Below, piece after piece: positions 718 through 34,429 of a DNA stretch of 36,198 bases. The translations under genes were made by a program, and so were the position numbers. Within the stretch, counting starts at the first letter, position 1, and every line of letters starts with the position of its first letter. This DNA comes from Klebsormidium nitens (taxonomy: Eukaryota > Plantae > Klebsormidiophyceae). The stretch lies in assembly GCA_000708835.1 (NCBI GenBank), contig DF237702.1, forward strand, positions 1-36,198, read 5' to 3'. Under the pieces are notes generated by a model, which saw only the letters and a list, made by a program, of their open reading frames with translations, did no database searches and was not told the origin of the DNA.

Positions 718-792
718 CTAGTAGTAGGTAGCAGATTCTCAATGGACTTTCCGAAAGTTGCGGAGCGGTGTGAGGGCTGTCCGCGGCACTAG

Positions 793-2040: not shown

Positions 2041-5985
<3,945 letters not shown>

Positions 5986-6480
5986 GAAGAGGACGAAAGA
6001 CATCCTCTATGCCGGACGAGACGAATAGATGGTGCTCTGATAGCTAGGCAACCAAACACCCAGGGGCCAGGTGACCTTGGTTTGCCTTCGGACTTCGGAA
6101 AGTGGCAGGAGATGTTGCATGTCTCTCCCCGTTCAACTGAGATAGAGTAGGTCTCCTTGCGTTGCGGCTCCTCGTGCCACTCGCTACTGATCAAACCAGC
6201 TTGAGCTGGATATATTCCAGGTGATATAGGCCCCCATTAGCTGTACGTTGAGAGATTTGAAATTATCAGTGTAGTATTGTGAAATGATCCTAGGAAGCCC
6301 CTCCATTGGGGGCGCCGTCTGGAGTGTTGTTTACTCCAGGGCTAGAGGGCTAGATTATTCTTTTGACAGACAATCGTGGAAGAAGCTCTGACACAAATTA
6401 TCAAGCCAGGCGCGGCTCATGCAGAAAGTGGATTCTGTTCATCGAGTCTCATACCCTTTAAAGGCCCCTAAGCTCTTCAT

Positions 6481-7050
6481 CTGCATATATGCACGGTCGG
6501 TAGACAGCGATCCAACATAACGCGGGATGTGGGACATTCAATCAGTTCATGCATGCCACACTCAATGTACAGAGCTTTGTCATGCACGTGAAAATTTCTC
6601 GGCAACTGTATGTTTGTTGCGCTAATTTAATGATGCATGTCAATTTAATACATCCATGTACCATCTATAAGTGTAGGCGCGGCACATGCATGTGCGAAAT
6701 TGCGCTGCGCATATATAGTAACAGCCATGGTTCAATCATACATATATGCCATGCATGATCCGGTCGATCGATCATGCTGGCTTGGCGAGCATGTATATAC
6801 CGTCCATCGCATCTGGCCGGCACATGCAGAGCCGGATCATGGAAGCGCTATAGTCCGCGCACGACACAGTGGCATGCGCGCAGGCTTGTCAAGAGATCGA
6901 AGTCCGTTTTCATAAGTCACTGCAATGGAGTGCCGCGCATCTCGACAGCTAGCTGTGCCCATAGCTCTCAATAAAATGTCTATGATGCAGATAGGCGCTA
7001 CACGCGCCAATATGTTGCACGAGATGCTGGCCGAGCTACGGTGGCATGCT
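6481..7050. other. Palindrome-rich block A (convergent spacer MAPK / CFIm68-like)
   Basis: 16 CATG in 6548-7048; perfect palindromes TGCATATATGCA (6482), GCACATGCATGTGC (6682), ACAGCTAGCTGT (6945); AATAAA at 6970. Confidence 0.8.
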
Positions 7051-7190
7051 CGAGTCCTCAACGGACTCTTAAGTTGGGACTCCGATTCATCAGGACTGTA
7101 TAATTCTTATTGTGTAATAAAGCCGGAATGTTCCAGCTTCGATCCGCCCTATCAATCTTTCCGCCCGAATTTGCTTCATCTGGTCTCTCT

Positions 7191-8850
7191 TCAGTCTCCT
7201 TCCCTCTTCCGTTTTTCTGGGTTGGGTCCTCCCCAGCCCCATCCAGGACCTGCTTCGTACCAACCTATGATCATGAGGAAGGGGAAACAATTGAACATTA
7301 CAAGAGTCCAAGGGTTGGGACGGTCTACTTTGCGAGCTGGCCATGGACACGTTAAGCTCAATAGAATCTCCAAAGACCAACACACCCGAAATCGACAAAG
7401 AAGGCCAATGAGCACCGTCTTTCGGTCTCAGTTTGTGATTTTAACCTTATGTTTCACAATTGGACGTAGCAACAGAGCAGTAACCTTAACGGGAATGCAA
7501 GGACCAACTGGAGGGTTGTTCAATAGTTGGTCTTTTGATGCACGCCCCATAGAAGCGGCAGCTGTACTGGCAGAGCGCTGTGTGCTCTTGCTCCTCCCAG
7601 ATTGTCCCCTCACCTTGTCCCTCTGCGTAAGGCCCCCTGGGAGGCCCTTCTGCCTCCCACCCTGCTCCATACCCTGGCCCTCCCCACTGTGCATACGACC
7701 CTCTTTCCCACCCGCCCCCGTCCCTGCCGTGGACGCCTCTGCCCCCCGCATATCCCGCGTCCCAACCTGGCGCACCCCCGAGCGGAAAGTCCATGCCACG
7801 CCCCCCTGGATAGCCGCCCCGCCCATGGCCGTCATCCCTTCCAAGGCCGGGTGCCCGGAAGCTCCCCGCGGCAGCCTCTGCAAACCCGCCTCGGCCAGAG
7901 GGGCCCCTGCCCGCCTCTCCTCGCCCTCGCCCTCCTGCCCCTCGCATGTCCTGCTCCATCCCCATCGCTCCATGCGCTGGCTCAGAAGGGTTCCGAGGCC
8001 GCGTCGTTGACGCGTAAGTAACAACGCAGGGTCTGCCCGTAAATACGCGCCCGTTCATCTTCTCCTTGCACGCTTTTGCAGCATCCGCGTCGAAGAACTC
8101 AGCCTGGCAGTAGCCCTTGAACTTGCCATTGGCCTTTTCCTCAAACAGCCGCAGTTCCTTCACCCGCCCGTACTCTGCCAGGGCGCGCTCAATTTCCTCG
8201 TCACTTGTCCACCAGTTGAGCTCCCCAACATACACCTGCGTCGGCTCCTTCCCGCCCTGCGGGGCCGCCCTGTGCAGGTGTGCTTGCGCAGTGGGCGCCC
8301 CTCCCGGGCCCAGTCCATGCCGCGCCATGTACTCACTTGCAAGCGCGGCGCTCGTCAAGGGAGTTGGCGCCGCGGCGGCGGGTGCTTTAGGGGCGGTCGA
8401 GCTGGTGGTGCTTTTGGTTGCGGTGACCTGCGCTGACGCGGGGGGGGCTGCTCCGCTTTCGGCCCTGCGCATTGGCGCACTGGTGGGCAAGCCCGCATCC
8501 GCCGGAGAAGCAGCCGTGGTAGCTGCTGGGGGTGGTGTGGCGGTGGGGCCTGCTTGTGTTGTGCTGGGGCCACTGCCCTTCACCTGCTGGCTGGGAGCTG
8601 CCGGGGGAGGGGCGGGGCGCGCCGCCGGCTGGCGCCCACTGGTGGTGGGCAGGGCACTGCTGGCGGCAGCTCGGCTGGGGGCGAGGATGGGCCGCGACGA
8701 CACCAGGTCCATGTCAATGTCCCCGTACAGATCGAAATCTTCAGCGTCTCCCGCATCAGCAGCCACCCCATCCCCTCCGACGGCGGCCGCACCACTGAAG
8801 GCCGAGCCCAGGCCCTCCTCGGGAACATCGCCCAGACTTCCAGCAGACAT
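7191..8850 (-). CDS. CFIm68/CPSF6-like RRM protein (pre-mRNA cleavage factor I large subunit-like)
   Basis: Exons 8850-7614 and 7264-7191 (phase-1 GT-AG intron 7613-7265). Acidic N-terminal DFDLYGD, Ala/Pro-rich linker, RRM VYVGELNWWTSDEEIE...FEEKANGKFKGYCQAEF...MNGRVFTGRPCVV, RGG/GW-rich tail ending PEKRKREGD. Confidence 0.8.
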
Positions 8851-9584
8851 GGCAAGAATCGCTGATTGCGTAGACAGCACCCGGCTTACTGGCCGCCTGA
8901 GATGCCCCTCAAATACCGGGCATGCTGTTGACGCAGTGCCTTTGCCGCCAAGGTACCTGCAGCCGCGCTTCTAAAAGGGGAGGACCATCGTGAATGCACT
9001 AGGATACGTAATTAAAGGAAACTTTTTCCGGCCCTCACTGTTGACTTCCATTGGCATGTGCTCGCTTGAGGTTGAAGCAGCAGGTACCGTGTAGACTGTA
9101 TAGGGCGATAGAGCCCACCTCGCCCATATACGAGGTGATTAACGTAAGCGTATAAGGTAGTCAACTTTCACGAACGAAGGCCCAAGTAAGGGGGATCCCT
9201 TGGTATGTAACCGGGCAGCTGGTTGATGTGTGTTTTGACACCAGTTGTTAACTCGTTATACAGAACATACCGCCGTAGGCTGTCCCGGCAGTTAGAGGGG
9301 CCCTCGGGGATGTCCGGCCTGTACTTTGAAACATATTAGCCAGTAGGTATATGAGTGCCGCCATAAGACAAGACTTACCATGAAAACGTGCACGTATATG
9401 CGAGCCCCCAGATGCCAATGGAGCTCTCACACTGTCACGGTTCTTTCGCTGTCCAACTTCACTTGGCTTCCGTTTCACCGTCCCTTGTTCCATATGCCCA
9501 GCTTGTCGACCACGTCTTTCAATTGGGGAGTACTTCCTAAGTTCCTCCCATCGCCCAGAGGTGTGAACTTGCAAACGATGAGTG

Positions 9585-12209
9585 ATGGCGGCGTGCTCGA
9601 CATCAGTGCTGCGGTGTGATCTTGGAACCTTCCAGGCAGCTGCTCACGTGAGTCATTGCCCCCCAAGAGCGGACGGGACTTGTTCGGTCTGGCCGGTGGC
9701 CTGGCCCGTCTCGCCGGGCCAACCAGGGTGGCGCACCACACCCGCTCGCCGCGCTGCTGCGAGGAGAGGGCCGCTCTGGCCCCCAGTCACGCAGCCCCAC
9801 CCGTGTCCCCACCGTTGTGCTGACGGCCGGTGGCAGGTGAGTGCCTGTCAAACCCGGCTTGCCTTCAATCCCCGCCTTGGGCTGCGCATGAGCAGCTGGC
9901 TGAGCAGCCTGTGCGCTGCAGTAGTTGGTCCCAGCACGTTCTCTTCGCTTGGCTGCTGTCTGAAATGCTGTGGCTGTGCAAGGGGAAGGTTGAACCCGTG
10001 AACTTGAATCTCAGAGGCTGCCTGTTTCTCCATTGGTTTGTGGCCCTCTACTTTTGTCCTGGCTGGTGGCAAGCAATCACTGTGAGTGGCATCTGCTTGC
10101 AGTCTCGGCAGGGCCGCCGGTTGCACGGCCCGACCATGGTAGCGGGCGATGACCGCATGCTTGGAGATGGGCCCTACTTCAGAACTGGGGGGACGTTTGG
10201 GGAGGAGGTGAGGCCCAACGTAGCGGGCAGCAAGAGGCACTGCGCAGGAGGACAAACAGAGAGGGGGCCAGCCTTGGGTGGCCGCCAGCCGGCTCCAGTT
10301 TCACAAGGATAAAAGAAAAGAGCCTAGAGAAGGTGCCCACCTGAGGGTCGTACATGGTAGCCGGACCCCACTGTTGTTCGTTGGAGCCGTTGAGCCCAGG
10401 CTCATGTATCTATGGCTGTCTTGTCCCTCTTGTATTTCCTTCCCATGGTTCGCCTCTGTCTGCAGCGCATCGGCGCGGAGCACGGCGAGGGGTTCACAAC
10501 GATCCGGCCGAGCGGGCAGGCGCTGCGCGTGGACGTGGACTTTCTGAATGAGAAGATGCGCAAGCGTGGGCGGCAGCGCATGCGCTTCCAGGTGCGCCCG
10601 GACGAGGCGTTTGGCCTGGTGTACTCGTGGGAGGGCGTCCTGGCCGACACGCGGCCCTCGCACACCGAGACCTGGCGCCGCCTCGCGGAGGAGGAGGGCC
10701 GCCCGGTGCCGGACTACAGCCGCCCCGTGCACAGCATCCCCCCCGAGCGTGTCATCACCCAGGTGAGAGCTCGCACAGCGAAGTAAAGCTTGGAGGGAAG
10801 AAGGGAGCGGTCAACTTGGCAGGCAGGGACAAGAGGGGCAGGCAATGCCGGGGCGATGAAGAAGTATTTCGCTTGAAGCAGATGGAATCCTTGGGATGCG
10901 AGCTTTATGCAGCCCTTTAGGAGGCGTTTGGGAGATTGGAGGATACCTGTGCAACTTGGGAGTTGGTGCACGACTGTTGGAGGAATTGGGGTCTTGCCTT
11001 AGATTGCCCCGTTCGTCAAATCGTTGGGCGCAGGTGCTGGGTTGGACAAGGGAGCCGGAGGAGGTGGCGCGCCTGGTGGTGCGCGCGTCGGAGCTGTACT
11101 GCCAAGAGGTGGCCAAGCTGCGTGCACCGCAGGCAGGCCTGCGCGAGTGGCTGCAGGTGAGGGCGCAGACGGGGCGGGCCGCAGGGAATGACGCGCTCTG
11201 GCTGACATCGAATCCTCGATATTATGTCCTTACAGAGCTGTTTAGAAGTGGTTCTTTCCCGGACACAGTCTTGTGTGTCTGAGCCCGTATTGGGGGTGGT
11301 GGTGCAGGCGCTGCGCACCGCGGGCGTGCCGTGTGCGGTGACGAGTGCGCTGAGCCGCGCGACGGTGGTGGCGATGCTGGACGCGTGGGGCCTGCGGCAC
11401 TTCTTCCAGGCGGTGGTCACCAACGAGGACGGCATGGAGGCCATCAGCCAGCGGTTCCTCTCGGCAGCGCTCAAGGCAAGCGCCGCCATGCCAAAGCCCA
11501 CCGCGTCACGAGGACCGGAAGTCGTGCCTCTTTTTGACACTGTTCGGGGGGGGGTGTTCAACAATCCGCCCCGCCGTTTTTTTGACTGTGCAAGGTCGTT
11601 GGAGCTCGACTGAGTTATCTCGTGAGATAAGTGCTTCGGATGTCCCAGCTGTGCTCTGCTGACGCGAGGGCGCGCTTGCAGCTGGACCGGGCCCCCAACA
11701 GCTGCGTGGTGTTCGAGGACGATCCTCGGGGGATCGCCGCGGCCCACAACTGCACCATGAAGGCCGTCGCCCTGGTGGGAACGCACCCGGCGTAAGCAAC
11801 GTGCCGCCCGTCTCAAAGGCGGAGCCGTAGTACCACGTCTTTGCTGAGCTTCCGTCCATTCCCATGCAAATGCCATTGCCTTGCTTGAATCTAGGTATAC
11901 ACGCCCATATCAGAGATTGTCAAACCAGGCACTCTGCGAGGAGGTTCATTTGGCACGACAGCTCTCTTCCTCTCCTGCGAAATGTCCGTCCCCCTCCCTG
12001 GTCGCCCTGACCGGCGCGCGCTGGGTGGCTGGTGCAGGTACGAGCTGGAGCAGGCGGACCTGACGGTGAGCAACTTCTCGGAGCTGTCGGTGATCAACCT
12101 GAGGCGGCTCTTCGCAAACCAAGGGGCGGAGTTCATGGATCCCCTAAAGCAGCCTAGAAATCAAAGCCCTCCTCGACGAAGGAACAGAAACGACATGATC
12201 CCACCGTGA
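9585..12209 (+). CDS. Plastid-targeted HAD-like hydrolase (At3g10970-like, CbbY/PyrP-related family)
   Basis: Exons 9585-9836, 10103-10207, 10466-10762, 11034-11156, 11308-11475, 11682-11791, 12038-12209 join in frame. Motifs RIGAEHGEGF, RPDEAFGLVYSWEGVLADT, DGMEAISQRFLSAALK, CVVFEDDPRGIAAAHNCTMKAV, ELSVINLRRLFAN; transit-peptide-like N-terminus. Substrate not determinable from sequence. Confidence 0.88.
11476..11681 (+). other. Non-canonical GC-AG intron in the HAD gene
   Basis: AAG|GCAAGC donor at 11476 joins FLSAALK to LDRAPNSCVVFEDD (acceptor TTGCAG at 11681), restoring the family motif SAAxKLDR. Confidence 0.85.
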
Positions 12210-12439
12210 CTGTCTTGTATTCTAGTTCTGCACGCCGGGAGGTGAAGTCGAATTTCATGCGGGATGGGCTCGAGTGCCAATCATAGGGCAGTAGCCTGGC
12301 CACACGATGAATGGCCGCCTCCGTGCGCTGATGTCTCATAACAGCCCTGATCAGGAATCTGGGTATAGCGCGCATCCTTTTTTGGTGATCAGGTAGGCGC
12401 CCCACCTCACATATACTGTGTCGACGTACCGTGTGATTC

Positions 12440-13005
12440 CATCCTCACGCATGGCTGGCGGCGCCCAAGGCAAACTGCGGGGGTGCACCATGCAATCTGG
12501 AAGAGAACGACGAGGTCAATCATAATACTCGAGGACATGCTCTGGCCCGATAGCACGCGGCTGCCAAACTCGTATGTTGATCGCCATGTTTAATCTAACT
12601 CAAGCAGCCTTTACGTTTGACCAGATCAACCCGCGGCTCTTAGTACACGGTATAGGAAGCCGCCCTGCATGCTCAAGCTTTTGATAGGATGGCACACCGT
12701 CCGATCTGCTTATAGTTATAATAAATGCCACATGATGGTCATGGATCAACGCCCGCGCGTCTGAGTATGTGTCACTCAGACCGCGTGGCCATGGACCCTT
12801 AACAATAAATTGCTCAAATACTGCGTGAAACATTTTGCCGGACCGCTCATCATGGCATGCGGATATTGGCGCACATCGCGCGGCAACACGTCACGAACAC
12901 AACGACCGGATCACAGTGTATAGATATGTGACCCTAGCACCTGATCGTATGATGCAAATAGGCCGTTCCTTTCACAGGCCGCGACCACAATGTCATGACA
13001 TGACG
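12440..13005. other. Palindrome-rich block B (convergent spacer HAD / KIAA1328-like)
   Basis: 12 CATG in 12450-13002; hairpin GTCTGAGT-n7-ACTCAGAC near 12759-12781; AATAAA at 12720 and 12804. Confidence 0.7.
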
Positions 13006-13347
13006 AGTGCCTGAGAAATTAGCCCTGTCATTGTGGGCCCTCAAATAATCAGTGTGCCAGCTTCAACAAAGTGCGCAACGGACCTTGTACATCCACCCTC
13101 ATCCGTGACATTTGTCCTTTAAGCTTGATGCGTCATGGGTCTTGGCCGTCCTGAAGCAGATCAGTTGCGGGGAAGAAGCTGCTGAAGATGCATCGGTTCG
13201 CGGCTCATGAGAGCCGACCAGTGCAACGAATATTGAGGGCTCCTGTAATCGTCTAGTACATGAGCTTTTAAAATAAGCAGTGAAGCAGCTGAACCAGCAG
13301 ATCGCACGTTTGCCAAGTTGGAGCCGCAGTGTCAAGATCAGCTACCC

Positions 13348-16300
13348 CTACCAGCCGTTTGTGAGCACCAGCACCTCCGGTTCCAATTGGGATTGCACAA
13401 AAGTGGGATGCCGGTCTCGTTTACCCCGCGCTTGCACCTTTCCCCGCCCGTTCACGCTTGAAACAGGTTGAGGCGCTCCGCGCCACTTCCGTTCCGCTTC
13501 TTGTCGATCCGTCTGCCGGGCCCAGGCCGTCAACTCCGCCGGGAGGTCGCCTCTCGGGTCGTGCCTGCTGGTGCGGGCGTGGTCCATCTCTAGTTCTTCC
13601 ACCAGCTCCAGCAGCGCGCTGTCGTACAGCATCCCGGACACCCACCGCGCCCGCCCCTGCCCGCCACCCCGGCTGGGGCTGCCCTCCGGACTTACGCTCC
13701 AATGCCGCACCCCACTCTCCTTGACCACAACACGCTGTGCGACACGCGGGGCCGCCGTCGCGAGCGCGAGGGGCACCTCTGCCCCCGGCACTCCCTCTGC
13801 CACTGCCTTTTGGAGTAGACTGGAGGGGGCAGGCCCTTCGACCTCCGCTCCTCGCGTGGCCCTTCGTCGGCCGTCCTGTCCCGGCCCCCCGAGAGGCGAT
13901 TCTTCCCGTGCTCGCCTTGACACGTCTTCCGCCCCCTCGCTTCTCTCCCCCGGCCTCCGCCTCTGGCCCCCTGTTTCCCCGCCCATTCCATCCCCTGCTC
14001 CGTCCGCCCTACTTTTCTCCACCACTGCAACGTCCACGTAATAGAAAGCCCCCGCATCCCCAACTGTAGGATCAAACCGCAGCACTCGCTCGCATGGCGC
14101 CTCCCCTCGATCAGGGATCCCGGATACGTCCGTTGCCCTGCCCACTCCCGCTGGGCCTGCTTGCGCGTCCAAGCGTGCCCCCTGTAGTTCCCGCACTTGG
14201 TCGGACCCCGCAGCACCGCACCTCACCTCCGCAGCTACTGCAGCCCCGCCCGAACTCCGAGAAACGTCCGAAGTTCCATTCATCGGCACCGCTCCCAGAT
14301 GCACCCGCTGGCAACCATCAGGAGCCCCTATCGGGTGGCCGCTCTTGAGCAAAGGGGCAGAGGCAGCGGCGCAGGTCGACGGGGGGCAGCCGCATGATGG
14401 GAGGGCCGTGCCCCAGAGAGCCTGCACGGCAGAGCCCTCCGCAGTGGTGGAGGCAGCAGGCAGGGAGGCGGCGGGGACGGGGGCAGGCCCAGCGATGGCC
14501 GGAGAGGAGACATCAACGGGGGGCAAGCGACCCTGAAGCACGCCAACAGTGGGTAGGACTGGCTGCGGTGGAGCATCTGGTACTGCTGCCCCATGCGGTG
14601 GATAGGAGGGTGGAAGACGAAGAGGCGCCTCTTTGGGGGGAAAGAAGACGGGGCGGGGCTGGCTAACAGGCCCCCCTACAAGGGGCTGGTGCGCACTGCT
14701 CATACACACTGCTTCGGTTTGACTGCCCAGGGGCGGTTCCCTCGCACCTGAGGGGTCTACTGCCAGCACGCTGCCTGGCGGGTTGGGGACCAGAAACCCC
14801 GTCCCAGTCTGCTTGCTAGGCTTCCCATCTGGTTCTCCCTGAAAGCAGGCAACTGCTGCCAACAGCACGTCAGCTGAGGCCGACACAGCCATCCCTTCCA
14901 TTGGTCGTTGGCAGACCTCGCTATCATGTCCAGGGGCAAAAGACACCGGCATTGTAGGGGCGTCTTCGAAAGCCATTCCCCCAGCCGCGTTGCCTCCCTG
15001 CGGCTTGCCCCCCCCCACCCCAACGTCTGCTCCGGCCGCGTCCCCGCCGTGCTGCCCCCCTCGCTGTGCCAGTTCCCCGCTGATGGCCCGGATGCGCTGC
15101 TCTAGCTCCGCCCAGGCCGCCCACACCCCCTCCGCTGGCGCGTCCGCTGCTCCTGACGGCGGCGAGTCCCGCCGCTGTTCAGATGAGGCTCTGGTAGCCT
15201 CCAGGACACCGGATATAGCAGGCGCAGCGGAGGTGGCCGGCGGGCTGTGGCCGCGGTCAAGAGCGGGCTTACTTGGGCTGGCAGGCAGCCCACCGCCTCG
15301 AGAGGGCTCAGCTTCAGGGGGGGTAGCTGGGGTCAAGTGGGCACCAAGGGAAGCAGAGGAGGTGACCCCTGGTGCGTTCAGGCTGTTGGGAGAGGTGGAG
15401 CGGGGCAGCGCCGCAGCCGCTGCCTGAGCGGGCTGTCCTGGTGTGGGGCTGTCCAGGGCCAGGGCCACCTCGCGAGAGGCCCCCACCTTCAGAGCCCGCA
15501 GCTGCAGGCAACGCCGGAGGCTCCTCAGAGGACAAGCAATCGCAGAGAGCTGACAGATACTCCTGCGCTCATCAACATCTGCCAGCTTCCAACGGGCTCG
15601 ACCGGGGGCTTGGCCCCCTTGGAAAGTTATTGGCCTCCAATCTCCAGTCACCTGCCCCCAGGCCAGCAGCCAAGCATGGCCCCTGCTCCTATCCCCCCCT
15701 CCAGGGCTCCTCACCTTGAGCTGGTAGGAGCGCAGCAGGCCGTCAGCATGCAGCAGCTTGAGGCGCAGTGCAGTGAGCTCGGCAAGGAGGTCGCGGTTCT
15801 GCGCCTGCAGCCCCTCCAGCGCCGCCTGCTGGCTGGCGCGCTCCTGCGCGGCCTCTCGCTGCACCGCCTCCTTCTCCTTGGTCACAGACACCACCTGCCA
15901 CCGCAAGCAACACCTCAGAAAGAGGGAGATGCATACTTGAAGGGAAGGGCTGCACTGAACAGGGCGGCTCTAAGGGGGGCATTGCAGCACTAGTGCTGAA
16001 GATGATGGGGAAATATAGCCATGTGATCAGAAAAAGAGGGGAACTGAGTCCTTGTGCCCAAGCGCCGCAGCTGGTAAAAGCACGTCCAGCATACTCAAGG
16101 GACCTGTACACCAATTTTCTTCAAAAATACCACAGCAGCCAGCCGGGAGCAAGTGTGTCTATCGTTGTACCAGGGCCGTCAGTGCTCACCTGGCGGATCA
16201 GCCTGGCCACCTTCTGCTTGTCCTCCTCACAAAGATTCTTCAGAGTAGCGCCCTGGGCAGGCACGCCATTAAATCCATTGGAGTCTGCTAGAGCCCCTTC

Positions 16301-16399
16301 ATTCACAATGTCTGCATATGCCAGAGTGCTTGACATCGCGCGGGTTTCCTTCTTGACCCTGGGCTTTGGCTGGCTCCTCAAATGAAGAGGGCGCTGCAT
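13348..16399 (-). CDS. KIAA1328/hinderin-like coiled-coil protein with long disordered tail
   Basis: Exons ...16399-16190, 15894-15715 and 15501-~13348 (phase-0 GT-AG junctions). The spliced sequence TLKNLCEEDKQKVARLIRQ|VVSVTKEKEAVQREAAQERASQQAALEGLQAQNRDLLAELTALRLKLLHADGLLRSYQLK resembles my recollection of the KIAA1328 N-terminal motif (LKDLCxEDKxxIAxLIxxL...LLxxYQ). Start and 3' end uncertain. Confidence 0.6.
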
Positions 16400-17316
16400 C
16401 CTTGCACAGCTTGGTTGTTAGCAGGCTGCACCGCCAATTTAGGGGCTTGCCTATTCGCAGAGAACCCTCTTTGCGACTGAAAGGCCCCTGGACTGATGCC
16501 AGAATCTGCATCCATCAGCAATCAATGGTGCATGCTTAGCATCCATCCCGACCTGCACCCATTCAAGGTGGCGAGTTGCTTCATGAGCTCTCATCATTGG
16601 CGTGAGACAGATCTCATAGCCTCCTCAATCCACTGGAAATCTGTTTTAGGGTTTGCAACTGCAGCGCTCACGAGCTAAAGTCTTCATACTGGCAAGTGCG
16701 GACAAGCTGGGGGCTCGCTGGCTGGTGTGCAGCACCACCATGAGGGACTTCCTAACCACATAAAAGACACCGTTTGCTGGAGATGTAGCCTTAGGGCTCC
16801 ACTCCCATGCAAGAGACTGTCATTGTCAATGTCTGCAATGCATGGCGCTCCCCCGGCTTCTCTTTAAAATTAGTAATCAAGGAGAAAGCTTTAATAATAA
16901 TAATATATTTTTACGAAGTGCGGTGACATAGGTAGGTAGTCATTGGAGCAAGTACGACGAAGCATTCTCCTTTTGTTAGTGTCTCAGGCTTCAAAAAGTG
17001 TGAAAACGTTTCACACGCGGGATCATAGGCTCTCAAGGTGTCCGCGTGGAATAAAATGTCAGATCAGGTCCTTCGATCAAAATTTTGTCAGACAATACCG
17101 GTAGTGGGCCGCGGGCGGCGGAAACTCTTTACCGAATGTTAACCAAAAGCAGAGCATCACGCTTGCAAATTTGCACAAACTCTTCACTCTCTTGCCAATG
17201 CCAAGGTGGAGTGGGAATTGCCAAGGTGGAGAGTCACATGTTCCACTTCTCCACTGCTATAATTTAGTAATAGGCAGAAGAGAAGGGCGTATTGACGAAG
17301 TGCGGAGCAGCCCAGC

Positions 17317-19784: not shown

Positions 19785-19824
19785 GGCAGGGCGGCTGAGA
19801 GCTCGCGGACTCACTCTCTACAGC

Positions 19825-20330
19825 ACACCATGCACTGTCTGATTGCTGCAGGCGTGCATCGCGTGCACAGATCGACTCATGTCGGGCGGCAGCCAACTCT
19901 TGCCTGTCCAGCTACGATCAGATTATCCGGGATCGATTTCGGTCTGTGTCGAGCTGCTCAAATCAAGCCATCATTGTGATGCACATGAATGCCTATGATC
20001 GCTGTAGCAGTTCCACTAGATTGCTATCATTGCTAGACGTTGGAGCTCTAGCATGCCCGGCAGCCCCAAGCTAGCCATGGTCCAGCAATCCGGGTGCATA
20101 TATCTCGTGTGTGAGCCACAGACGGCCATGATGCATTTCGTAGCCTTTCGTACATCTGTCTAGTATCAACAATGACAATTATAGCGTCACTGGCACCACA
20201 GTGATCTAGTTAGACGGGGTCGATTGGATCGAGCGGCCATATGCATGTCGATCGGAGACCGCCGGCCGTCTCTGCCACAGTGCAGCGGCCACACTTTTCA
20301 ACATGAACGTGTGATGTAACTTTATTCAAG
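19825..20330. other. Palindrome-rich block C (convergent spacer TMEM186-like / CTDSPL2-like)
   Basis: 8 CATG and 7 GATC plus several CTAG/AGCT/TGCA/TCGA; near-palindrome GAGACCGCCGGCCGTCTC (20255-20272); minus-strand AATAAA at 20321-20326. Confidence 0.7.
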
Positions 20331-20751
20331 CAGCAGCTCAAGCAATCCTAGTGCATGCAGCCTGGTCAGATGCTGAGTCACACATTGTATGCTGCCATCC
20401 AATCAGCGAAGGCATCGTGCAATACACAACAGATGGTGCTTGGGTTTGTAGGCCATGCTTCGTGCATTTTGATTGGCAGCAACCAATCAAAGTCCTGCTT
20501 CGGAATATCTAGCCCGCTGTCCCATTCAAAAACGAAAACTGTCTGTTTCGCACGTTAGGTCCCAAATTCCCCCCCTTGGGACCAACATAAATGTCGTGTT
20601 CTCAATTGGAACTAATGAATGGTTGCAATGGTCCTAGAGATTGAGCCGGTTGGTTGCTTCTAGAACTCTTGTTCTACGTGTCCTTGGGTTGGCAGTCGTC
20701 TAGATTACCTCAGCCCTCCGATGTACATCACACCGGCTGCAGCCCCACTCC

Positions 20752-23700
20752 TTAGCGCAACAGCGGGTCTCCCAGACCCTTTTCTGGGGGCTCCTGAGCC
20801 GCTTCTATTTTCTCTCTCAGGTTAAACTCCTTCAGGACTAATGGCCTGACGTCCTCTACTCCGACTAGGCTTTCCAGGAATGGCAGCAGTGTCAGCAAGG
20901 CGGAATCCTCCTGGTCGTCAAACCAGCTCTCGATGGGGATGCCGTTTTCAACCTGCGTACCGCACATCACGAGCTTTCAGGATGCAAGAAGGCGCCGATG
21001 TTTCATTTCCATGATTAGATTGAGCTGAGGGTGGCCAAGAATAGAAGCAAAGAGGGCGGATCCGTGTTCCAAGAATAACCTCCGCTGACCGCATCCGCAT
21101 CCTGAAGATATGCAGCCTCCGAATATGGATGCAGAACAGCTAGATTGTCGACAAATCTACAAGAACTCGGCAAAAACAGAGCTCGCAATCACCCCGTTGT
21201 CGGAGTGGCGGCACAACCAAGTGAAAACGGACGCATGCAAACCGGGCACGCAGGCACCTAAACAAAGACAAGAGTAGAACGCCAGACACCAATCTGGAGG
21301 GCCAAAGGTTACCACCTCAGTCTTTTCGTACTTCAAGCGGCATCAACAACCTTCCCACAGTTATACGCAGGAACAAGAACAAGCAAAAGGGGCCTGGGAG
21401 GGCCGTACCTGGAAGCCAAACGCCTGCGGGGAGTTGTCCACAATAACTGTCTTGGCGAGGTCCCGGCCGAGCACGGAGAGGTCCTTGAGGTAGTTGCCCT
21501 CCACGTACACGCACGACTCGCGGAAGATGCGGTGGCGGATGAGGCGCCGCTTGGGGTCCAGGATGTTGAGCAGCGTCTCCGCGTACACGCTCTGGCTCGC
21601 GGTGAACACAATGATCTCAAAAAGCTGCGCCACGCGCTCCATGAACTGCTCCAAGTGCGGCCGCCGCCGCACATACACCTGCACCAGTCAAGAATGCCTC
21701 TGCTTAAGAGGATGGGAGGCAAGTGCAGACACAATCCTTTACTAGCGCACGTCGTCCACAATTCATCGTCCCATTCGAACCCGTGAGAGCTTTCGACCTG
21801 CCATTTGAAGCAGGCCAGCTCAGCATCTCACGAAATCAGCAAGCATTTGTCGCCTTGCCATAGTGCTGTCCTCCCCAAATTCGCCTGTTGCGGGCAGCAT
21901 GCTACCAGAAATGACGTTGTTCTAGCCAGCTGCAAAGGTGAGCAAACACGAAAAGGGCTAGCTTACGCTGGCCGCCCCTGCCTCTCCCCTCACACTGTCA
22001 GCCCGCTCACCGTATGCTTGCAGCCGTTGAAGTGCACGGGGAAGTTGAAGTCGGCGTCGTCGCACAGCTCCAGGGTGGAGTGCACCAGCGTCTCGTCCAG
22101 GTCCAGCACCAGCGTGATGGGCGGGGATCGCCGCGTCTGCTTGGGCAGCAGCACCGGCCGGCACACCGGCACGCACTCCGCCAGCAGCGGCAGCCGCTTG
22201 ATGAACAGGTACGGGTCGAAGTCGTCGTAGTCGTCATCGTCCCCCTCCTCCCCGCTCGCCGCGTCCTCGTCCTCGCACTCCAGCGCCACCGCTGTGTCTG
22301 CGCCGTCCCCCCGCACAATCACCAGCGACCTCTCCTCCTCCTCCTCCTCAACAATCGTGGTGATCTTGGGCTCACCATCTCCCCCCCCTTCTCCGCTCCC
22401 TTCCGAGCCGTCCCCAGTGCCCGTCCCCCTGGCCGCTGCCTCAGGAACGCTCTCGGCCAACTCTTTCCCCGGAACCTCTACCGCACCCTTCCCCTGCCGC
22501 CCTTGGACCAGCGGCTTTCCTAGCTCCTGGGCAGCTTGTGTTGCCCGGGAGGTGGCGGTGGAGACCACCGCGTCTCTGCTGTGCACCACAGTACCTGCGA
22601 AAGCCAGCCGCAGGCCATGAGTCCAGATGCTTTTCTGGTGACAAAGTCCTGCCCTGAATACATCTGGCTTGCATGATGAGAACGAGTTGCCGGAAGAGAC
22701 TTACTAGGAGTCCCCTTCCTTGAACTTCTCAAGAAGTTGAAATGTACGATGAGCAGAATCGAGATAAGCTGTTGTCCAGCAGTTGCTTGATATGGAAGAA
22801 GCAGACGGAGCTGCTGGGCAATCGCAGCAAGGCTGGTGCTTGCTTACCTTGACTACTAACCCTGCTTACAGTCTTGGAATGGGCGGCCCCCTCCTTTGCC
22901 CCAAACAACGTGAAGACAGGCGAAAAAATGGTCTCAATGATCGAGCTGCTCCGAGACTGTGGCGCTTCGTGACCACGGCGCACTCGCTCGCTGTTGTCTG
23001 GGGAGGGGGCAGCTGAAGTCGACTTGGGATCCTGCAGATCAAAGGCAGGTATTTGCGCTGCACCTTGCACACCATGCAGCAGCCCAAACATCAGCTTGGG
23101 CATACTACCAGTCTGTGCTTGACAAGTGCCATTCACAGCATCCATCGGCATGGGAATGAGACTCTTCAAGAACCTCAAAACTTGCAGTGTGCAACGTTGA
23201 ACCGAAAAATAAATCTTTGCCCCGCAATCAGGTTTCCAAGTTGACACACACCTCAGTCTGCACGACCTCCCCATCGCGCTCAACTGCATCTTCCAGGTCT
23301 TTGTTGGCCTTCTCTTCATGTGCAGGCCCGTCAAGCGGCGGATGAGGCCAAAGGGGTGAGGTTACCAATGGCAGCGCTTCTCCTGCCCAAAAGAAAGCAT
23401 TGCAATAAGCAGACCTTCAGTGAAGCAGTTGCTCAATAAGCTTGACAGAGGAGCCTGGAGCACCTGGGCAATGAGCATCTATTGCAATCTGTACCCGCAC
23501 TTACAAGCGGCAGGTGCACAGCCCTAGGAAAAACCATGGCGATTCCGTCTGATTGCCACTGGTGCTTGTGTGCTCACCAGGTCGCCGCCGTTTTGAGGCA
23601 GATGTGATCATAGTCTGAGCATCCGTCCTGGTACCCGCCCCCGTTGGAGTGTCTGGTTTCAACCTTTTATGAGACCTCGGCGTATGTGCTGCAACTTGCG

Positions 23701-23764
23701 GCTCCTCTGTAGCAGGCTTCGGCATCCTCCTTGCCTTAGCAGGCACTTTGCGTGCCCTTGCCAT
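20752..23764 (-). CDS. CTD small phosphatase-like (CTDSPL2/SCP4-type, FCP1-like HAD) protein
   Basis: Exons 23764-23578, 23382-23252, 23031-22848, 22594-22011, 21678-21409, 20952-20752 join in frame. TIFSPVF motif, [11 protein letters not shown], catalytic [12 protein letters not shown] (DxDxT), [43 protein letters not shown]. Confidence 0.92.
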
Positions 23765-25149
23765 TGTCAAATCTGCAAAAGCGATGCAAATAGGACTCAA
23801 GAAACCAACCATTAAAGTGTGCAAAGGACCTCAACTCCACATATGTCACCCGTGTGCTACAGTATTGCTGACAGAACATCATGAAGGCATCAAACGAAAG
23901 GACTTTGGATTTTCCCGGTCTGCCCAAAAACCTGGAAGTTGGCACGCTTTGTAAGTGTGATGAACGAGTTAATGAAATGGTGCCTGGATTCCAATCAGCT
24001 TCCTATGGAGCAGAAACCTAGCACATTTTTATAAAGAAGAGAAAGAGCTACTGCCAAAAAGAGAGAATCACAGCCAAATCAACAAGGTAACATTGCACTT
24101 ACCTTACCTCAGAAAGTTTGGCAGATCGAGCAAATATGCACCCCAAGATTAGCTATGGCTCTAGCAAAAACCTAAAATCCCCTCTGCGGTCCAGGCCGGC
24201 GCCTTTGAACCCAATATGAGAGCGCCTACGTCGCCAAAGCGAGCAAAGCTGAGCAACTGCGCGTTCTAAGAGCCGATGGCCAGAATGTCGAGTTTTGCAA
24301 AGCCCTCCTGGCCCGGACCCTGTCCACTCTGAAACCTGTTTCCTTCTTTGCTAATCGCCTCTCGCCTCTCTCTGCTAGGCGTCTACCTACGTACCTATCC
24401 GCCTCCCCAACTTGCTCGAAAACTCCCAACTCCCAGACAACCTCCCCTTCATTCTTTCCAGATGCAGGCTGCAGCCTCAGGTCGATTGGGAGCTTCGCAA
24501 TGCGCATACCTAAAGCAAAACCTCATGTGGCTGATTTCATAGAGATTGTTCAGATTTGGTACCCGTTGGACGATGCGCCCGGGGGCAAGGTCTGGGCTCT
24601 GAAGGCTCACTGGTCAAAAGTTTTGCCGCACGGCTCTCCTACCAGGATTCCGGTGGTCCGCTTGGCCTCCCGACCTGATGGGTGGCCCTTGCTGCTTCAT
24701 GCAAGGGCCGTGACTCACCCCGGGTCCCGGTGTACCGGGGACTTAGAAGTACTGTGGTCCCCGGGGAAGGCTCCCCTTTCCAGATCACATTTTACAACAG
24801 AGCTACGGTCCTACCGTCAGATGGTCCAGACGGACGGCTCGAGATGATCCGCAGCCCAAGGGCTGATGCCCTCCCGGTGGATGGTGAGCCTGTCAAGAAG
24901 AGGAACATCACATGTGATCATCACAGTGATGCATGATTCACGACTCTGATGCCTTCTGCTCCGAGCACCATCACACATCATGTCACATGTGCGTCGTGAC
25001 ACTGATTCTGAAGGATACAGCCAGGGTACAGCGGCAGGCTGTTGCCAGCATTGTTGCGGCCGCCGCCACTGCCCTGCTACTAGTGCTAGTAGTAGTAGGA
25101 CCTACTGTAGTACGGTACATACTCTATAGGCTTACGCAGCATTAGAACC

Positions 25150-28100
25150 ATGGCGGCTGTGGCCTCAGCGCGCCAGAAATTCCTTGGAGGGACCGCTCGC
25201 TTTCAAGAGCTGAAGTCTGCCAGTACTCCTTTGGAAACAACTTCCATAAATGTCGGTGCATCTACTAGAAGACTTTCGTCCAAGCCCTCTTTGTCAAGAA
25301 CAATCAGCTACGGTCTGTCCTCACTCTGTTGGAGCGGGCCAATTGACATCAGTAGGCGAAAACCTTTTGCAACTTGGCGGAAAGACTGCTGTTCTAAAGT
25401 CTCTACCAAAGGGCATGGGGTCAGGCGGCATTGGCGCCAGGCAGCAATGGCGAGTGATGGTCCTATTGAGGAGCCACAGAGTACAGACAACGGCAGCAAT
25501 GAAGGGAGCACGTCCGGTTCAGATTCTGACAAGTGAGACACTTCGTGCCGAAGCGGAACATTGAAAGCACCACCGTAGATGCAGTGGCTACCCGTCTGCA
25601 AGCTTTTCTCGCCACTGTCTGATTGATTTGAGAGTTAGTCACCATCAACTTTGTGGGTTGTCTCTGCTCTTGCTATTGGCATAGCTGGTCGTGTCCGAAA
25701 TGGAATGCGAAATCAAAAAGATGCCTTCATTACAGAAAATGCGGGCAGCTTACCACTGCGTAGTCATGCTTCTCAATCCTGTTGGGGTGCACTGTGGACT
25801 GGTTCACCAACTGACTAGTTCTTCATGCTGCGCTGTACTTTGACTCCATAAATCTGGCCCCTGGCTGCTGCACTCAATCGTTTGTCTCAGCAAGTGCAAC
25901 GTATTGCATCGAGGGCTGGGGCAACTACTGCTTTGCTAGTACCACCACCAGAGAGCACACTTAAACGGGTCTTGAGTATAAGTGCCCATGCTTCTTTTGC
26001 AGTGTGACTGTGGGCCTGGCAGAGCAGTTTTGTATCATTGAGGGGGCAGAGACAATGCAGGACTTTGCCCGGATGCAGCTAAAAGAAATCAAGGAGAACA
26101 TCGCAAGCCGCAGGAATAAGATATTTCTGCTCATGGAAGAGGTACGAATCACTGCCCTCTTGACCATGGTGTGAGTGGTGTCTGCCAGGTTCGGTGGTCG
26201 GTCAGTGATTCTGTGTTCTCCCCTTCTCATGCCCTCAGATGATGCACGCAGCTTGAAGGTTGCCAGTTCTTCATGATGTGGCAGAGCAGAAGAGTGTCGA
26301 TGGCCTTGAGCAAGGGGTAGAAAACTTGGCATGAGTTTCATCCAGGTGCGGCGACTGCGCATTCAGCAGCGGTTGAAGAGTGCGGAGAAGAGTCTCCAAG
26401 AGGACTCTGAAGACGAGACGGCGTACCCGTCGTCTATTCCGTTCCTCCCGCCCTTGGTGAGTATGGCTGCACTGATGCGAAGTTCTTGTGCTGGCCCTTG
26501 GACTCATCTGAAGGGGAGTTATGTTTACATTAGCCTCTGAACCGCTAATGTGCAAATCACTCTACATAACGGGTTTCATTGCCCTTCAAAACTGGGCATG
26601 GCTGGCTGGCAGTGGCAGCTCATATGAACATCTTAGAGTGCAGCAACAACCTTGGCAATCGAGCAAGTCAGAGACAGATGACGCAAGCCCTGACCGGTTT
26701 TCGTTTGCAGACCAAAACAGACCTTCGCCAGAAGTACTACGTCACCTTCTTCTCAATGATTGGCGCAGTCATCGTGTTTGGAGGCTTCTTCGCACCTGTG
26801 GTAAGTTTGAGAAAGTGTTCTTACTCGTAGATAGTCTGGACAGAACCAGAGAAAAGAGCTTGAGAGCAATTTCTTTGGTTCTGTCCAGTCTATCTACGAG
26901 TCAATTCTCAATCACGCAAAGGAAGCATATAGATGAAAGGCGTGTTCGTGGTGACAACTTGAACCTTCGCACTGTGAAATGAAATTCAGAATCTTGCCGA
27001 AAGTGCGTGCACGACCTACGCTGTAAGATTCTGAGAGGTAATGTTGTTGGAGAACCTTGAAAACTTTCCCGTCATAGTTAAGACCGGTTGCTATTTTCGA
27101 GAGTGTCCGAGCGGGGACAAGGAGAAGCTGTTTTCGCAAATTCAGAACCGAGGACACTGTTGGAAGGTGTCAGTTTCGGGATTTGCAGTGTTCTCAGTTC
27201 TTGGACGCTTTCCTTGAAGGAGCTCCGACGGCTTCTAAGCTTGCCCCAGAGTCCATTCGCGCGAGGAAGTCAATGAACATGTGATTGAGTTCCTCAAGTC
27301 TATCCGACGATTCAAACCCACCTACAATAAAAGCTCAGCCTTCTGTCACGACTCAACAACTTTCCAACAGCGTATTCGGTTTCGCTTCTGCGACGATTGT
27401 TTTTCCTTGTCCATGCTTTGTCCGCTTGAGCTTGTGTGCAGTTTGGAGAAGGCTTCCCACTGATTTGGCCCCTCATATGCCCTTACAGTTGGAGTTGAAG
27501 CTTGGAATTGGCGGAACGTCCTACGCGGACTTCATCAGAAGCCTGAACCTGCCAATTCAGCTCAGGTTCGTCCGTTTCCCTTGATTACAGTGGCACTGAA
27601 TGACCAGTGGTTCTTTACTGCTGACAACATTGTTGTACTGGCAGGATACCTTCCCTTGTCTTACTTTTGGCACTTGCGCGACTGGCCTCTGATGTCCTTT
27701 CAAGGCTTGCTGACTCTCAGGCGCTTGGACACGCGGGTCTGGGCATGCTGGTGACCCTTTTCTCGGCCTCGTTCCTGTGCAGTCAAGTGGACCCGATTGT
27801 CGCCTCGTTCTCGGGTGGCGCTGTGGGTGTGCTGTCGTCGCTCATGATTGTGGAGCTCAACAATGTGTCACTTCAGGAGGAGAAGAAGTGCCACTACTGT
27901 GAAGGAAGCGGTGAGGACCCCTGACGCTGCTTTCTCTTAGCTCCAAGGGCATAGTCCCCTGCTTTGCTGTCTGCTGTGGCGGGGTTCCAACTTTCTCTAT
28001 GCAGCCAAGATGGTCCGAGGTTGGACGTTGCCTCTCTGCCGTTTAAATAATTCTTCCACAGTCAGACTGGTACATCCATAGCACTAGTCTCTAGAAGGGA

Positions 28101-28973
28101 AGTTGAGGCGCGAAGGTTCTTGAAGATTTCCTGCTGCTTGTCCCAGCCACTCTTTGGCCTGATTCCATCACTTCGAGGACGTCGTCCTGCCAAGGGGAAG
28201 CTGTGCAGTTGAGCGGATTCAAAAGGATGTGTCTCGTGCCTTGTCTCCAAAAAAGCGAATGGCGGCCAATGACAGGCAATTGGCTGCACCTGGGGACGTC
28301 GTTGACTGCAGAAGGGCTATCATTCTAGTTGCGGCACTGCGGTTGGCCGGGAACGAAGGGATGGCCGAGTTCTTGCCGCAGTCGATTGACAAGCGAGCAG
28401 AATTCATGACAAGCAGTTACCAGAGGTGTGACTGATTGGACCGGGCGGGTTCCGTGCAGGGTACCTGGCGTGCGCCAAGTGCGGCGGCATGGGCGCCATC
28501 CTGGACCCGGGGGAGCGCGAGCAGCTCAGGGAGCAGCTCATCACCGCGGGGAAGGTGGGCGGGGCCAGCCGGCAGGTGGCGCTCAAGAAGCTGCGCGCGG
28601 AGCGGTGCAACAACTGCAGTGGCGCCGGCAAGGTAGGGCCGCGGAACCAGTGCGACTCGTGCTGGCAGGCGCTGTTACCGTGGGTGTGACTGGGACGAAG
28701 CAAGATCAATCAAACAAGCCGTACGATGTCCTGATGAACGGTCCCTGCGACGTTGCTCAAGAAACTGTACCCGGAGATGTCAACGCCCTTTTCACTGACG
28801 ATCGCTGGTATAGTATGATTTATGTTGACAGGTCACTTCACGATCTTCTGCACCTATGCTGCGGACTTGTAAAGCGATTCATTTGTCCGTGCCAGGTCAT
28901 GTGCCCCACTTGCTTGTGCACCGGGATGGCCCTAGCCACGGAGCACGACCCCAGGATTGACCCGTTCGATTGA
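25150..28973 (+). CDS. OR: ORANGE (OR) family DnaJ-like zinc-finger plastid chaperone
   Basis: Exons 25150-25532, 26003-26141, 26346-26456, 26711-26800, 27489-27565, 27783-27910, 28460-28632, 28896-28973 join in frame. FCIIEGAETMQDF, NIASRRNKIFLLMEEVRRLRIQQR, LGIGGTSYADFI, QVDPIVASFSGGAVGV, four CxxCxGxG repeats, terminal EHDPRIDPFD. OR versus OR-like paralog not resolved. Confidence 0.93.
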
Positions 28974-29289
28974 TCAGCGAAACGCGAACGATCGTAGGAG
29001 TGCTGCGAAGCTTCTGCGTTGTTTGAAACCCGATTTGATTGGAAGTAGAAACGTTGAAGGTTTGTTCGAGTGACTAGGATTATGCGACTCTAGTAGAAGC
29101 TGAGTAGTCGTAGATACGAGACAAAAACTAGCATTGAACTCGAGCGTCTGGTCGAGAACGGGTGAAATCAAAGCTCGTTTCCATTCGATCCGGCCATCAC
29201 TGCTTTCATGGTACTCATTCTCTTGAACTGCCTTTGACGCACAGACTCGAGCCATTGTTCAACCATTTTCGCGTTCAGAATCGAGCACT

Positions 29290-30030
29290 CGAGCAGCATG
29301 CACAGCTGCCATTGAGAGAAGCCGTCTGTATCCAATGATGGTGGCTATCTTCCTGCAACATTGATAGGAAGTACATTGAGAAGTACACATTTCGTTCTAG
29401 GGAAGTACATAGTCACCGTCTGAACCCATAACCTGGCAACAAGCTCGATTGCCTCAGAGTCCTGGTGGCCGCGGGCCGCCTGTATCATAACGAACCAGCT
29501 GGTATTAGTGAGACAATGCGCTGCAATGCCCATGATGTATCATAGCTTACATAATGATAGTATGCCATGGCATGATGCAGCTTGATCATGTGTAGTGACC
29601 GCGTCCGACGCCCATGTAGGAATGCGACACACATGCTGCCACTGGCATACAGCATGCAATCAATCAATTTCGATCGATCAATCACAATGATATATAGCTC
29701 CGCGCTAGCTAGTCAATTGACTCTCGAGTCTTGCTTTAACATATGCGATGTTTGATTCACATGCATGCACATGTGACGTGGCGCAGGCGGCTGCAAGCTA
29801 TATTTAGCTAGTTGATTGGATCGACCACAACGGTCAAAATTACTAGTTGGGTCCCATGCATGCACATGCATAATATAACGAACGCATGTGACTCGTACTA
29901 TAATGATGTAGTTTAGCCTTGCAAAAAGGTCACCAGTAGACGGCCAGGCGCGGTCCCGTATACAAACTCCAGGCCCGTCCGACTGCCCGCGCAGTATGTT
30001 CAATCCGTGACTCGCGCGGACAGCATGGTG
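29290..30030. other. Palindrome-rich block D (convergent spacer OR / PP2C)
   Basis: 15 CATG in 29531-30027; perfect palindromes ATGCCATGGCAT (29562) and AGTCAATTGACT (29711); CGATCGATC, CTAGCTAG, CACATGCATGCACATGTG (29758), CATGCATGCACATGCAT (29855). Confidence 0.8.
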
Positions 30031-30498
30031 CACTTGTCAAATATATGAAACAAGCGCTGACGGCTCAATGTTTTTCTACACAAGATAGATTGCGCATGTT
30101 CTTACAACTAGCTGCAAAATGGTTAATATGACAAAGATTCCTAACATTGCAATCGGCCAGGTGATTGCATCCTTTCCTACAAAGAAACTTACACAATCGG
30201 TTTGCTCTCGGTGTGAACAACACATGATCAGCGCTCAGGGCGCACAACAGCGTGGTTCTCATTGCATCATACTCAAGGTAATCGACTCCACTTAGGTACT
30301 ATCAACTAGTGTCCAACAATTACCTGGCGCTTCTACAAAGACATGTCGGTGGCGTGGCATCAAGCACAAGCAAGGAACGAGTCCAGAAACAACTTCAATT
30401 AACCAAACCAAACCCCTCGCAATCGATTTCGGGCTTATTAACAACATGTCAACACATGGTCAACAACAATGTACATTGGTGAGACTGTGGAAGGGCGA

Positions 30499-34154: not shown

Positions 34155-34429
34155 CCGGGAACGACCGATCGGCAGGGGTTGCCACCAACTTTCACCGGTG
34201 CCGGCTGCCTACCGGCTCCCCTGCAGTATTACCGGTTGACCTGGAGGCGGGACAAGTCACCGGGCACCGGTTTTACCTCCGTGCCATCCTATTTTTTTCC
34301 GACTTTTCAGCCGGTGAGGTGCCTTCGGCACCGGTGCATCTTCCCATTTTGTGCCGGCCAGGTCCAGCTTTAACACCGGTTCGTGGCAAGCACTGCCGAT
34401 CGGCCGGATGGCGATAAGGGCCTCCCCGG
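34155..34429. other. Dense CCGG/ACCGGT motif cluster upstream of the PP2C gene
   Basis: 13 CCGG in 275 bp, five of them ACCGGT (34194, 34231, 34266, 34330, 34375). Confidence 0.75.

Follow-up and report, generated by a model that had tools for sequence, protein, structure and literature searches.

The stretch analysed here is the entire scaffold DF237702.1 of Klebsormidium nitens (GCA_000708835.1; 36,198 nt, called the window below), and our subject is a set of four non-coding blocks, A to D, which are dense in short palindromes and lie in the gaps between its converging genes. We show that such palindrome-rich convergent gaps are real and are common to related algae; apparently they are also undescribed, and no description of the pattern was found in the literature searched. 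Gene coordinates follow the NCBI assembly ranges for the genes up to 24452 and for the gene start at 25447, and RNA contigs for the flanks of block D; the annotation used covers the scaffold up to ~32.3 kb.

Block A (6481–7050) is the palindrome-rich core of the stop-to-stop spacer (5986–7190) between a protein kinase gene (597 amino acids; 2041–5985, plus strand) and an RRM-domain gene (436 amino acids; 7191–8850, minus strand). The core in block B (12440–13005) is weaker and belongs to the spacer (12210–13347) between a HAD-hydrolase gene (408 amino acids; 9585–12209, plus) and the orphan gene KFL_007530040 (847 amino acids; 13348–16399, minus), while block C (19825–20330) is the core of the spacer (19785–20751) between a TMEM70-like gene (344 amino acids; 17317–19784, plus) and a NIF (CTD-phosphatase-like) gene (540 amino acids; 20752–24452, minus). 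Block D (29290–30030) lies between the 3′ ends of an ORANGE-like gene (293 amino acids; 25447–29268 with its 3′ untranslated region (UTR), plus strand, five GT..AG introns in the RNA contigs) and of a multi-exon minus-strand gene whose 3′ part (30059–32256, seven CT..AC introns) was traced and which extends past 32256. As the sequence-only reading of this DNA had claimed, a block is present at every convergent junction of the scaffold (4/4), with A, B and C placed between stop codons by the NCBI ranges and D between transcript ends by RNA contigs. The three divergent spacers, taken as negative controls, are unremarkable in palindromic tetramers: the observed/expected ratio (O/E) is 1.19 (z 1.4) at 8851–9584, 1.01 (z 0.1) at 16400–17316 and 1.00 (z 0.0) at 24453–25446. 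The annotated part of the scaffold holds no tandem junction, so that the count of four out of four has no tandem contrast there.

RNA-type contigs from four runs of four studies, aligned on 26400–32399 with poly(A) sites not resolvable to the base, place the two transcript ends that face each other across block D. Plus-strand ORANGE-like transcripts stop at 29133–29268, the 3′ end of the minus-strand gene lies at 30059–30095, and depth is zero across 29400–29999 in all four runs. Block D is an untranscribed gap between two converging transcript ends, and the 3′-UTR flanks have palindrome z scores of 0–1.7. Convergent genes of yeast have bidirectional terminators, in which one intergenic element is where both transcripts end; the K. 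nitens blocks share with these the position between converging units, but here the mark is composition rather than a defined signal. At block D, and at contig resolution, both transcripts do end at the flanks of the element. The earlier proposal of a two-way termination zone fits as far as location goes, but the words AATAAA and TGTAA are inconsistently placed at the block edges.

The CATG counts first reported for blocks A to D (16, 12, 8 and 16) are exact, and the remainder of the window carries ~2.2 per 500 bp, the blocks being 5.0 times denser in CATG than the rest. The other words named with it are likewise denser in the blocks than elsewhere (GATC 2.9-fold, TGCA 2.1-fold, AGCT 1.6-fold, CTAG 2.6-fold and ATAT 5.1-fold), and purine–pyrimidine alternation reaches 0.60–0.67 against ~0.47. 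The expectation of about two CATG against which these counts had been set holds under base composition only; dinucleotide-preserving shuffles of each block give 6.3–9.8. Against these shuffles the CATG excess has z scores of 2.4, 2.8, 0.6 and 2.6 (A to D), not significant in block C, and the excess specific to CATG is merely 1.2–1.9-fold. What survives the dinucleotide-shuffle check is the palindromic tetramers as a class, whereas CATG alone gives a modest signal and, in block C, none. Thus palindromic tetramers reach z 5.4 in block A, 4.4 to 4.9 in block D and 3.5 in block C (12.3 per 100 bp), though the CATG score of the last is 0.6; block B is weakest, with 10.3 per 100 bp and z 1.9 for the block, or 3.0–3.4 for its entire spacer. 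A sliding count of 4-bp palindromes along the window has four peaks, exactly at the blocks (19, 10, 12 and 16 per 100 bp, A to D), over a background of ~5. Twelve RNA-defined introns have no excess (z −1.0), in agreement with the first impression that introns are free of such blocks.

The blocks also differ from their surroundings at the level of dinucleotides. Their rho values are high for AT (1.60), GC (1.45) and CA/TG (1.47) and low for AA/TT, CC/GG and AG/CT (0.7–0.8), and neither CG (1.01) nor TA (0.90) is depleted, in contrast to the window remainder, where CpG rho is 0.67–0.75. ApT is the most enriched dinucleotide, at 2.3 times its level in the remainder. This regime alone leads to 6–10 expected CATG per block. 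G+C content is 0.47–0.50 in the blocks; the RNA-defined introns, with a matching 0.50, differ fully (AT 0.78, TA 0.53, GC 1.05). The blocks are a distinct compositional class of DNA. Avoidance of dipyrimidines under ultraviolet light was considered as a sufficient cause of the depletion of purine–purine and pyrimidine–pyrimidine steps and rejected, given that AGCT, GATC, CTAG and TCGA contain such steps yet are among the most enriched words, and that divergent spacers lack the depletion.

In being discrete domains whose dinucleotides are unlike those of the neighbouring methylated, transcribed DNA (CpG O/E ~1.0 against 0.67–0.75), the blocks resemble CpG islands; unlike these they are not GC-rich (0.47–0.50) and do not lie at promoters, and to our knowledge a palindrome excess of this kind has not been reported for CpG islands. 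A footprint of 5-methylcytosine deamination, another of the earlier proposals, is disfavoured because the blocks are precisely where CpG is least depleted (rho 1.01, compared with 0.75 in the remainder) and because the published CG methylation of K. nitens is located within active gene bodies, not in gaps, and is excluded from promoters (PMC5890265). A related idea is that symmetric DNA methylation, with the blocks as its substrate, would mark the gap epigenetically; the mark could be N6-methyladenine (6mA) at ApT in words such as CATG, GATC and ATAT, or the product of tetranucleotide-specific methyltransferases. The high ApT and the 5.0-, 2.9- and 5.1-fold densities of these three words fit it; nevertheless, palindromes free of ApT (AGCT, TCGA, CTAG, CGCG, GGCC) are enriched equally or more, and our literature search yielded no 6mA data for Klebsormidium. 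Papers on Chlamydomonas and ciliates reportedly deal with 6mA at ApT, and the eukaryotic mark is known from the 5′ ends of genes and not from 3′ gaps, which also counts against this explanation. On balance we consider it unlikely.

Another suggestion is that each block clusters many copies of the RY element (CATGCA), to which B3-domain factors of the ABI3/VAL type would bind so as to recruit Polycomb or to insulate. The local density of the word is very high in blocks A and D: CATGCA plus its reverse complement amount to 22 copies in the blocks (2.4 kb in all) and 27 in the remaining 33.8 kb, and the RY/Sph element of plant B3 factors, CATGCATG, occurs five times in the blocks and not in the rest of the window. 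However, the hexamer is no more frequent than its sub-words predict (CATGCA 14 against 12.7 expected from pentamers, its reverse complement 8 against 8.8), its distribution over the blocks is uneven (9, 2, 2 and 9), and it is sparse both in blocks B and C and in the relatives, with just four copies in 1.7 kb of gaps of the close relative introduced below. Considering further that many unrelated palindromes are enriched to an equal degree, we regard RY clusters as a highly improbable explanation.

Rather than any particular word, it is short dyad symmetry as such that is in excess. In the K. nitens blocks 291 palindromic tetramers were observed where first- and second-order Markov nulls both expect ~200 (z 6.2–6.6), and the gaps of the relatives hold 439 against 320–325 expected under the same two nulls; the z scores of the two sets span 6.2–6.9. 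All 16 palindromic tetramers exceed their trinucleotide expectation in the blocks, with a pooled O/E of 1.41, compared with 0.98 in genes and 1.03 in divergent spacers, while control word classes of the same size have no excess: mirror words (xyyx) stand at 0.93–0.98, tandem words (xyxy) at ~1.1 and unreversed complements at ~1.0. The palindrome signal is nearly independent of the individual word, and CATG is simply the commonest of the symmetric words given the dinucleotide make-up of the blocks. The excess resides in self-complementary dinucleotides (arm 1; 0.31 against 0.21) and in their lengthening to 4 bp (arm 2; 0.36–0.40 against 0.27); past 4 bp it is almost absent, the probability of extension being near its shuffle value. 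It also falls as the spacer between the arms lengthens, being largest at 0 nt, smaller at 1 nt and smaller again at 2–3 nt.

This limit of 4 bp bears directly on structures that would require longer symmetry. The five perfect palindromes of 12–14 bp first noticed in blocks A and D are present (starts 6482, 6682, 6945, 29562 and 29711), a sixth lies in block B (start 12990), and six of the 18 perfect palindromes of at least 12 bp in the window thus fall inside the blocks, which make up 6.6% of the sequence; together with the purine–pyrimidine alternation of 0.60–0.67, these are what would speak for cruciform- or Z-DNA-forming DNA, or for decayed copies of one transposon or miniature inverted-repeat transposable element family. 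On the other side, the symmetry excess is over at 4 bp, and single-strand folding of blocks A and D is no better than that of shuffles (z −0.5 and −0.7), so that the sequence has no potential for hairpins or cruciforms. Converging transcription, by the twin-domain model, generates positive supercoils, which oppose cruciform extrusion. Nor do the blocks have any alignable sequence in common; they lack terminal inverted repeats, and in the window there are no further copies of them and no terminal-repeat pairs, only chance-like repeats of 15–22 nt. The earlier view that they are not one transposon family is borne out, that of cruciforms is not, and structure-forming DNA and decayed transposon copies alike are highly improbable as the source of the signal.

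The nearest published pattern is that of longer, AT-rich inverted repeats within yeast 3′ UTRs (PMC6420913). The repeats at poly(A) sites of Saccharomyces cerevisiae have arms of at least 5 nt and loops of at most 8 nt, lie 20–90 bp upstream of the poly(A) site in the 3′ UTR and are AT-rich (PMC6420913); like the blocks, they represent dyad symmetry enriched at the 3′ ends of genes with members rich in ApT and TpA, and they were proposed to aid the completion of transcription (Miura et al., 2018; PMC6420913). The K. nitens excess, in contrast, consists of loop-free words of 2–4 bp that lie past the transcript ends and fill 500–700 bp at 47–50% GC. Repeats of the yeast type (arms of at least 5 nt, loops of at most 8 nt) are not enriched in the blocks, and block D is outside both 3′ UTRs.

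Within the gaps the symmetric words tend to be doubled. Tandem doublets of period 4 number 48 against 23.8 expected (O/E 2.1), and this excess comes wholly from palindromic units, of which there are 26 doublets against 4.1 expected (~6-fold; mainly CATG, AGCT/GCTA and TCGA/GATC twice in a row), whereas non-palindromic doublets are at expectation (22 against ~19.7). The distances between palindrome centres have lag peaks at 2 and 4 only, and nucleosome-type periodicity of 10 bp is unconvincing (WW dinucleotides 1.10 at lags 10–11, with no second harmonic). The doublets recall the de novo duplications of 2–4 bp that depend on topoisomerase II (Top2) (bioRxiv 10.1101/2020.05.03.075358), in that tetranucleotide doublets are over-represented at a place where Top2 would be expected to act. 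One might suppose that the enzyme cleaved abortively, leaving breaks staggered by 4 nt, and that fill-in and joining of the ends then duplicated 4-bp cores and left a scar. The 4-bp duplications known from yeast depend on non-homologous end-joining, but no dyad symmetry was seen at the duplicated sites (bioRxiv 10.1101/2020.05.03.075358), whereas in the blocks only palindromic units are doubled; a fill-in scar would predict non-palindromic doublets as well, and of these there is no surplus. Moreover, fill-in yields direct and not reverse-complement repeats, so that by itself it leaves the main signal, which is reverse-complement symmetry and not direct duplication, unexplained. The location does suit the enzyme: Top2 relaxes the positive supercoils that arise between converging genes. 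Even so, a Top2 scar is a very unlikely account of the blocks.

Syntenic contigs of two relatives were located via the window proteins. The close relative is represented by the Logan assembly of SRR23617307 (contigs L002 and L004; ~80–84% nucleotide identity in genes), the distant one by JGI metagenomes 3300060284 and 3300060285 (contigs L005–L010; 31–57% protein identity), in which gene orientation was taken from open reading frame (ORF) calls and Pfam matches, one junction (Rad51-like versus ABC gene) being only probable. In L009, the ABC_tran domain that goes on along the plus strand at 5653–5934 implies that the ABC gene runs toward the palindrome block at 7201–7800 of that contig, and the minus-strand gene calls at 5762–6703 are probably spurious. 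The gene order and alternating orientation of the RRM, HAD, orphan, TMEM70 and NIF genes, together with the kinase, are kept in L005/L006 at 31–57% protein identity, and synteny breaks past NIF.

Exons and introns of the close relative can be aligned to the window, as can parts of its UTRs, but the alignment ends at 6453 and 7122, ~30–70 bp outside block A, and breaks off in a similar way around blocks B and C. Inside block A the sole aligning part is a 36-nt island (6927–6962; 86% identity to L004 2188–2223), which contains the 12-bp palindrome 6945–6956; block B cannot be aligned with that species. When aligned globally, the blocks do no better than shuffled sequences, whereas an intron-containing control reaches z 85. 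The palindrome excess is nevertheless still present in the unalignable orthologous gaps of the close relative (z 3.3–4.7), and the sequence of the blocks turns over faster than that of introns while their statistical property is kept across species. Over the three species the 12 convergent junctions (four in K. nitens and eight in the relatives) have O/E 1.12–1.52 and maximal local densities of 10.3–19.0 palindromic tetramers per 100 bp, and the eight divergent spacers 0.91–1.19 and 6.3–8.7; the two density ranges do not overlap, and a value of ~10 per 100 bp separates the 12 from the eight. Of two spacers in the distant relative that look co-directional, one is positive (3.6 kb, O/E 1.26, z 4.6) and the other is not (O/E 1.10), so that the property may be either specific to convergent junctions or general to 3′ flanks. 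The O/E of individual words is not significantly correlated between species, although six of them (AGCT, TCGA, CATG, TGCA, TATA and CTAG) exceed expectation in each of the three.

The blocks may instead be a selected two-way terminator or boundary, in which dyad words would be functional and one copy would serve both polymerases, be it as symmetric sites for dimers or as a mechanical or chromatin barrier. In favour of this, block D occupies exactly the gap between transcript ends, all 12 convergent junctions and none of the eight divergent spacers carry the property, the gap stays at 0.5–1 kb although the genome is compact, each of the three species is enriched in a common core of words, block A shares its conserved 36-nt island with the close relative, and there is a yeast precedent in the short inverted repeats tied to poly(A) sites (PMC6420913). 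Against this, apart from the island there is no conservation of position or sequence, the excess is spread over nearly all 16 palindromes instead of one site, words of poly(A)-signal type are inconsistently placed, and a clear 10-bp periodicity of nucleosome type is absent. That such tracts also occur in one apparently co-directional spacer of the distant relative indicates, in addition, that strict two-way function is not required. A selected element is a serious, if less probable, rival to the footprint favoured below.

We take the blocks to be the untranscribed DNA that separates the poly(A) sites of two converging genes, a zone in which transcription running on from either side has to stop. 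Considering that a conserved, nearly word-independent property is found here on non-conserved, fast-turnover, untranscribed DNA, we favour a continuing strand-symmetric process over binding sites, and suggest, tentatively and with somewhat less than even confidence, that the blocks are the footprint of strand-symmetric mutation or repair in a fast-turnover termination gap. A process of this sort would operate at the DNA level and write the short-palindrome signature where transcription and gene-body methylation are absent and insertions and deletions are tolerated; candidates include end-joining with palindromic additions of 1–2 nt from hairpin-type intermediates, that is, break repair adding very short inverted copies, and the footprints of transposon excision. 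Conserved cis-elements would then not be the cause, and the role of the gap in termination may be a passive one, namely spacing. Whereas the location of the blocks, their composition, the class of symmetry and its limit at 4 bp, and the loss of sequence with retention of the property are direct observations, the mutational origin and the repair mechanism are what we infer from them.

Several observations weigh against a mutational origin. The two assemblies of the distant relative (L005 and L006) are identical over 15.4 kb including the gaps, except for 22 differences, so that across the gaps they offer no polymorphism to read, and no mutation was directly observed. Divergent spacers, which are partly untranscribed too, lack the signal, and thus the absence of transcription alone is insufficient. 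The genome is compact, yet none of its convergent junctions has lost its gap of 0.5–1 kb in spite of deep divergence, a hint that at the least the presence or length of the gap is under selection; the six words above expectation in three species leave room for word-specific readers; and the 6-fold excess of palindromic doublets (26 against 4.1) is not specifically predicted by a simple model of short palindromic additions. It is formally conceivable, though rather unlikely, that termination or boundary zones of klebsormidiophytes are marked by a sequence-independent 'dyad-symmetry code', in which 4-bp palindromes would be read, or continually written, by an enzyme of two-fold symmetry. The reader or writer might be a DNA methyltransferase acting at ApT or at tetranucleotides, topoisomerase II, or a boundary protein that binds as a dimer, and one stretch could then serve both genes while its sequence drifts.

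If the origin is indeed mutational, as in the footprint that we favour, the gaps constitute a natural record and a clean genomic readout of palindrome-writing break repair, and they call for caution in motif searches, given that CATG, RY and GATC 'sites' would arise without selection. If selection is responsible, they would represent a new kind of boundary or terminator, set by symmetry statistics and not by a conserved motif, which would help to explain how converging genes avoid interfering with each other in a compact genome of the plant lineage. Either way, the density of palindromic tetramers offers a simple means of recognising convergent 3′ ends in these genomes without any annotation (12 versus eight spacers in this data set).

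As regards the genes themselves, the product of the RRM gene (7191–8850) is named 'hydroxymethylpyrimidine kinase' by NCBI, but Pfam finds only an RRM domain in it and the name is probably an annotation error. The orphan gene is GC-rich, and KFL_007530040 is matched at 99% by an 852-amino-acid ORF at 13348–15906 (minus strand); homologues of the 293-amino-acid gene carry the name ORANGE in a protein search with ORF 28428–28973. A protein-representative search with ORF 5047–5778 gave no K. nitens paralogue among 13 weak matches, and the window was negative when scanned for tRNAs and Rfam families. All 22 differences between L005 and L006 fall within ~430 bp of the kinase gene (L005 13282–13713), a patch that could be a diverged haplotype or a gene-conversion tract.

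Finally, some further features lie towards the ends of the window. Upstream of the kinase gene the assembly stops after 2–2.8 kb, in K. nitens (window 1–2040) as well as in both metagenome contigs from the distant relative (L005 17293–20086; the right end of L006), which suggests an assembly-breaking repeat at that place. Between 790 and 1140, that is, 0.9–1.25 kb upstream of the kinase start, lies a cluster of GGTAC/GTACC with 16 of the 70 occurrences in the window within 350 bp and with palindromes of 12–14 bp at 831, 909 and 1099; the adjoining 1207–1420 shows partial conservation in the close relative. SBP-box proteins bind sites that have GTAC as their core. At 510–519 the window reads CTGACGTCAG, which includes the palindrome TGACGTCA. 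At the opposite end, 34395–34689 is a CpG-rich stretch with three perfect palindromes of high GC content, one of them a 14-mer built from GCCGCGG halves, and an alternation of 0.50, unlike the blocks, and is probably the promoter region upstream of the minus-strand gene.

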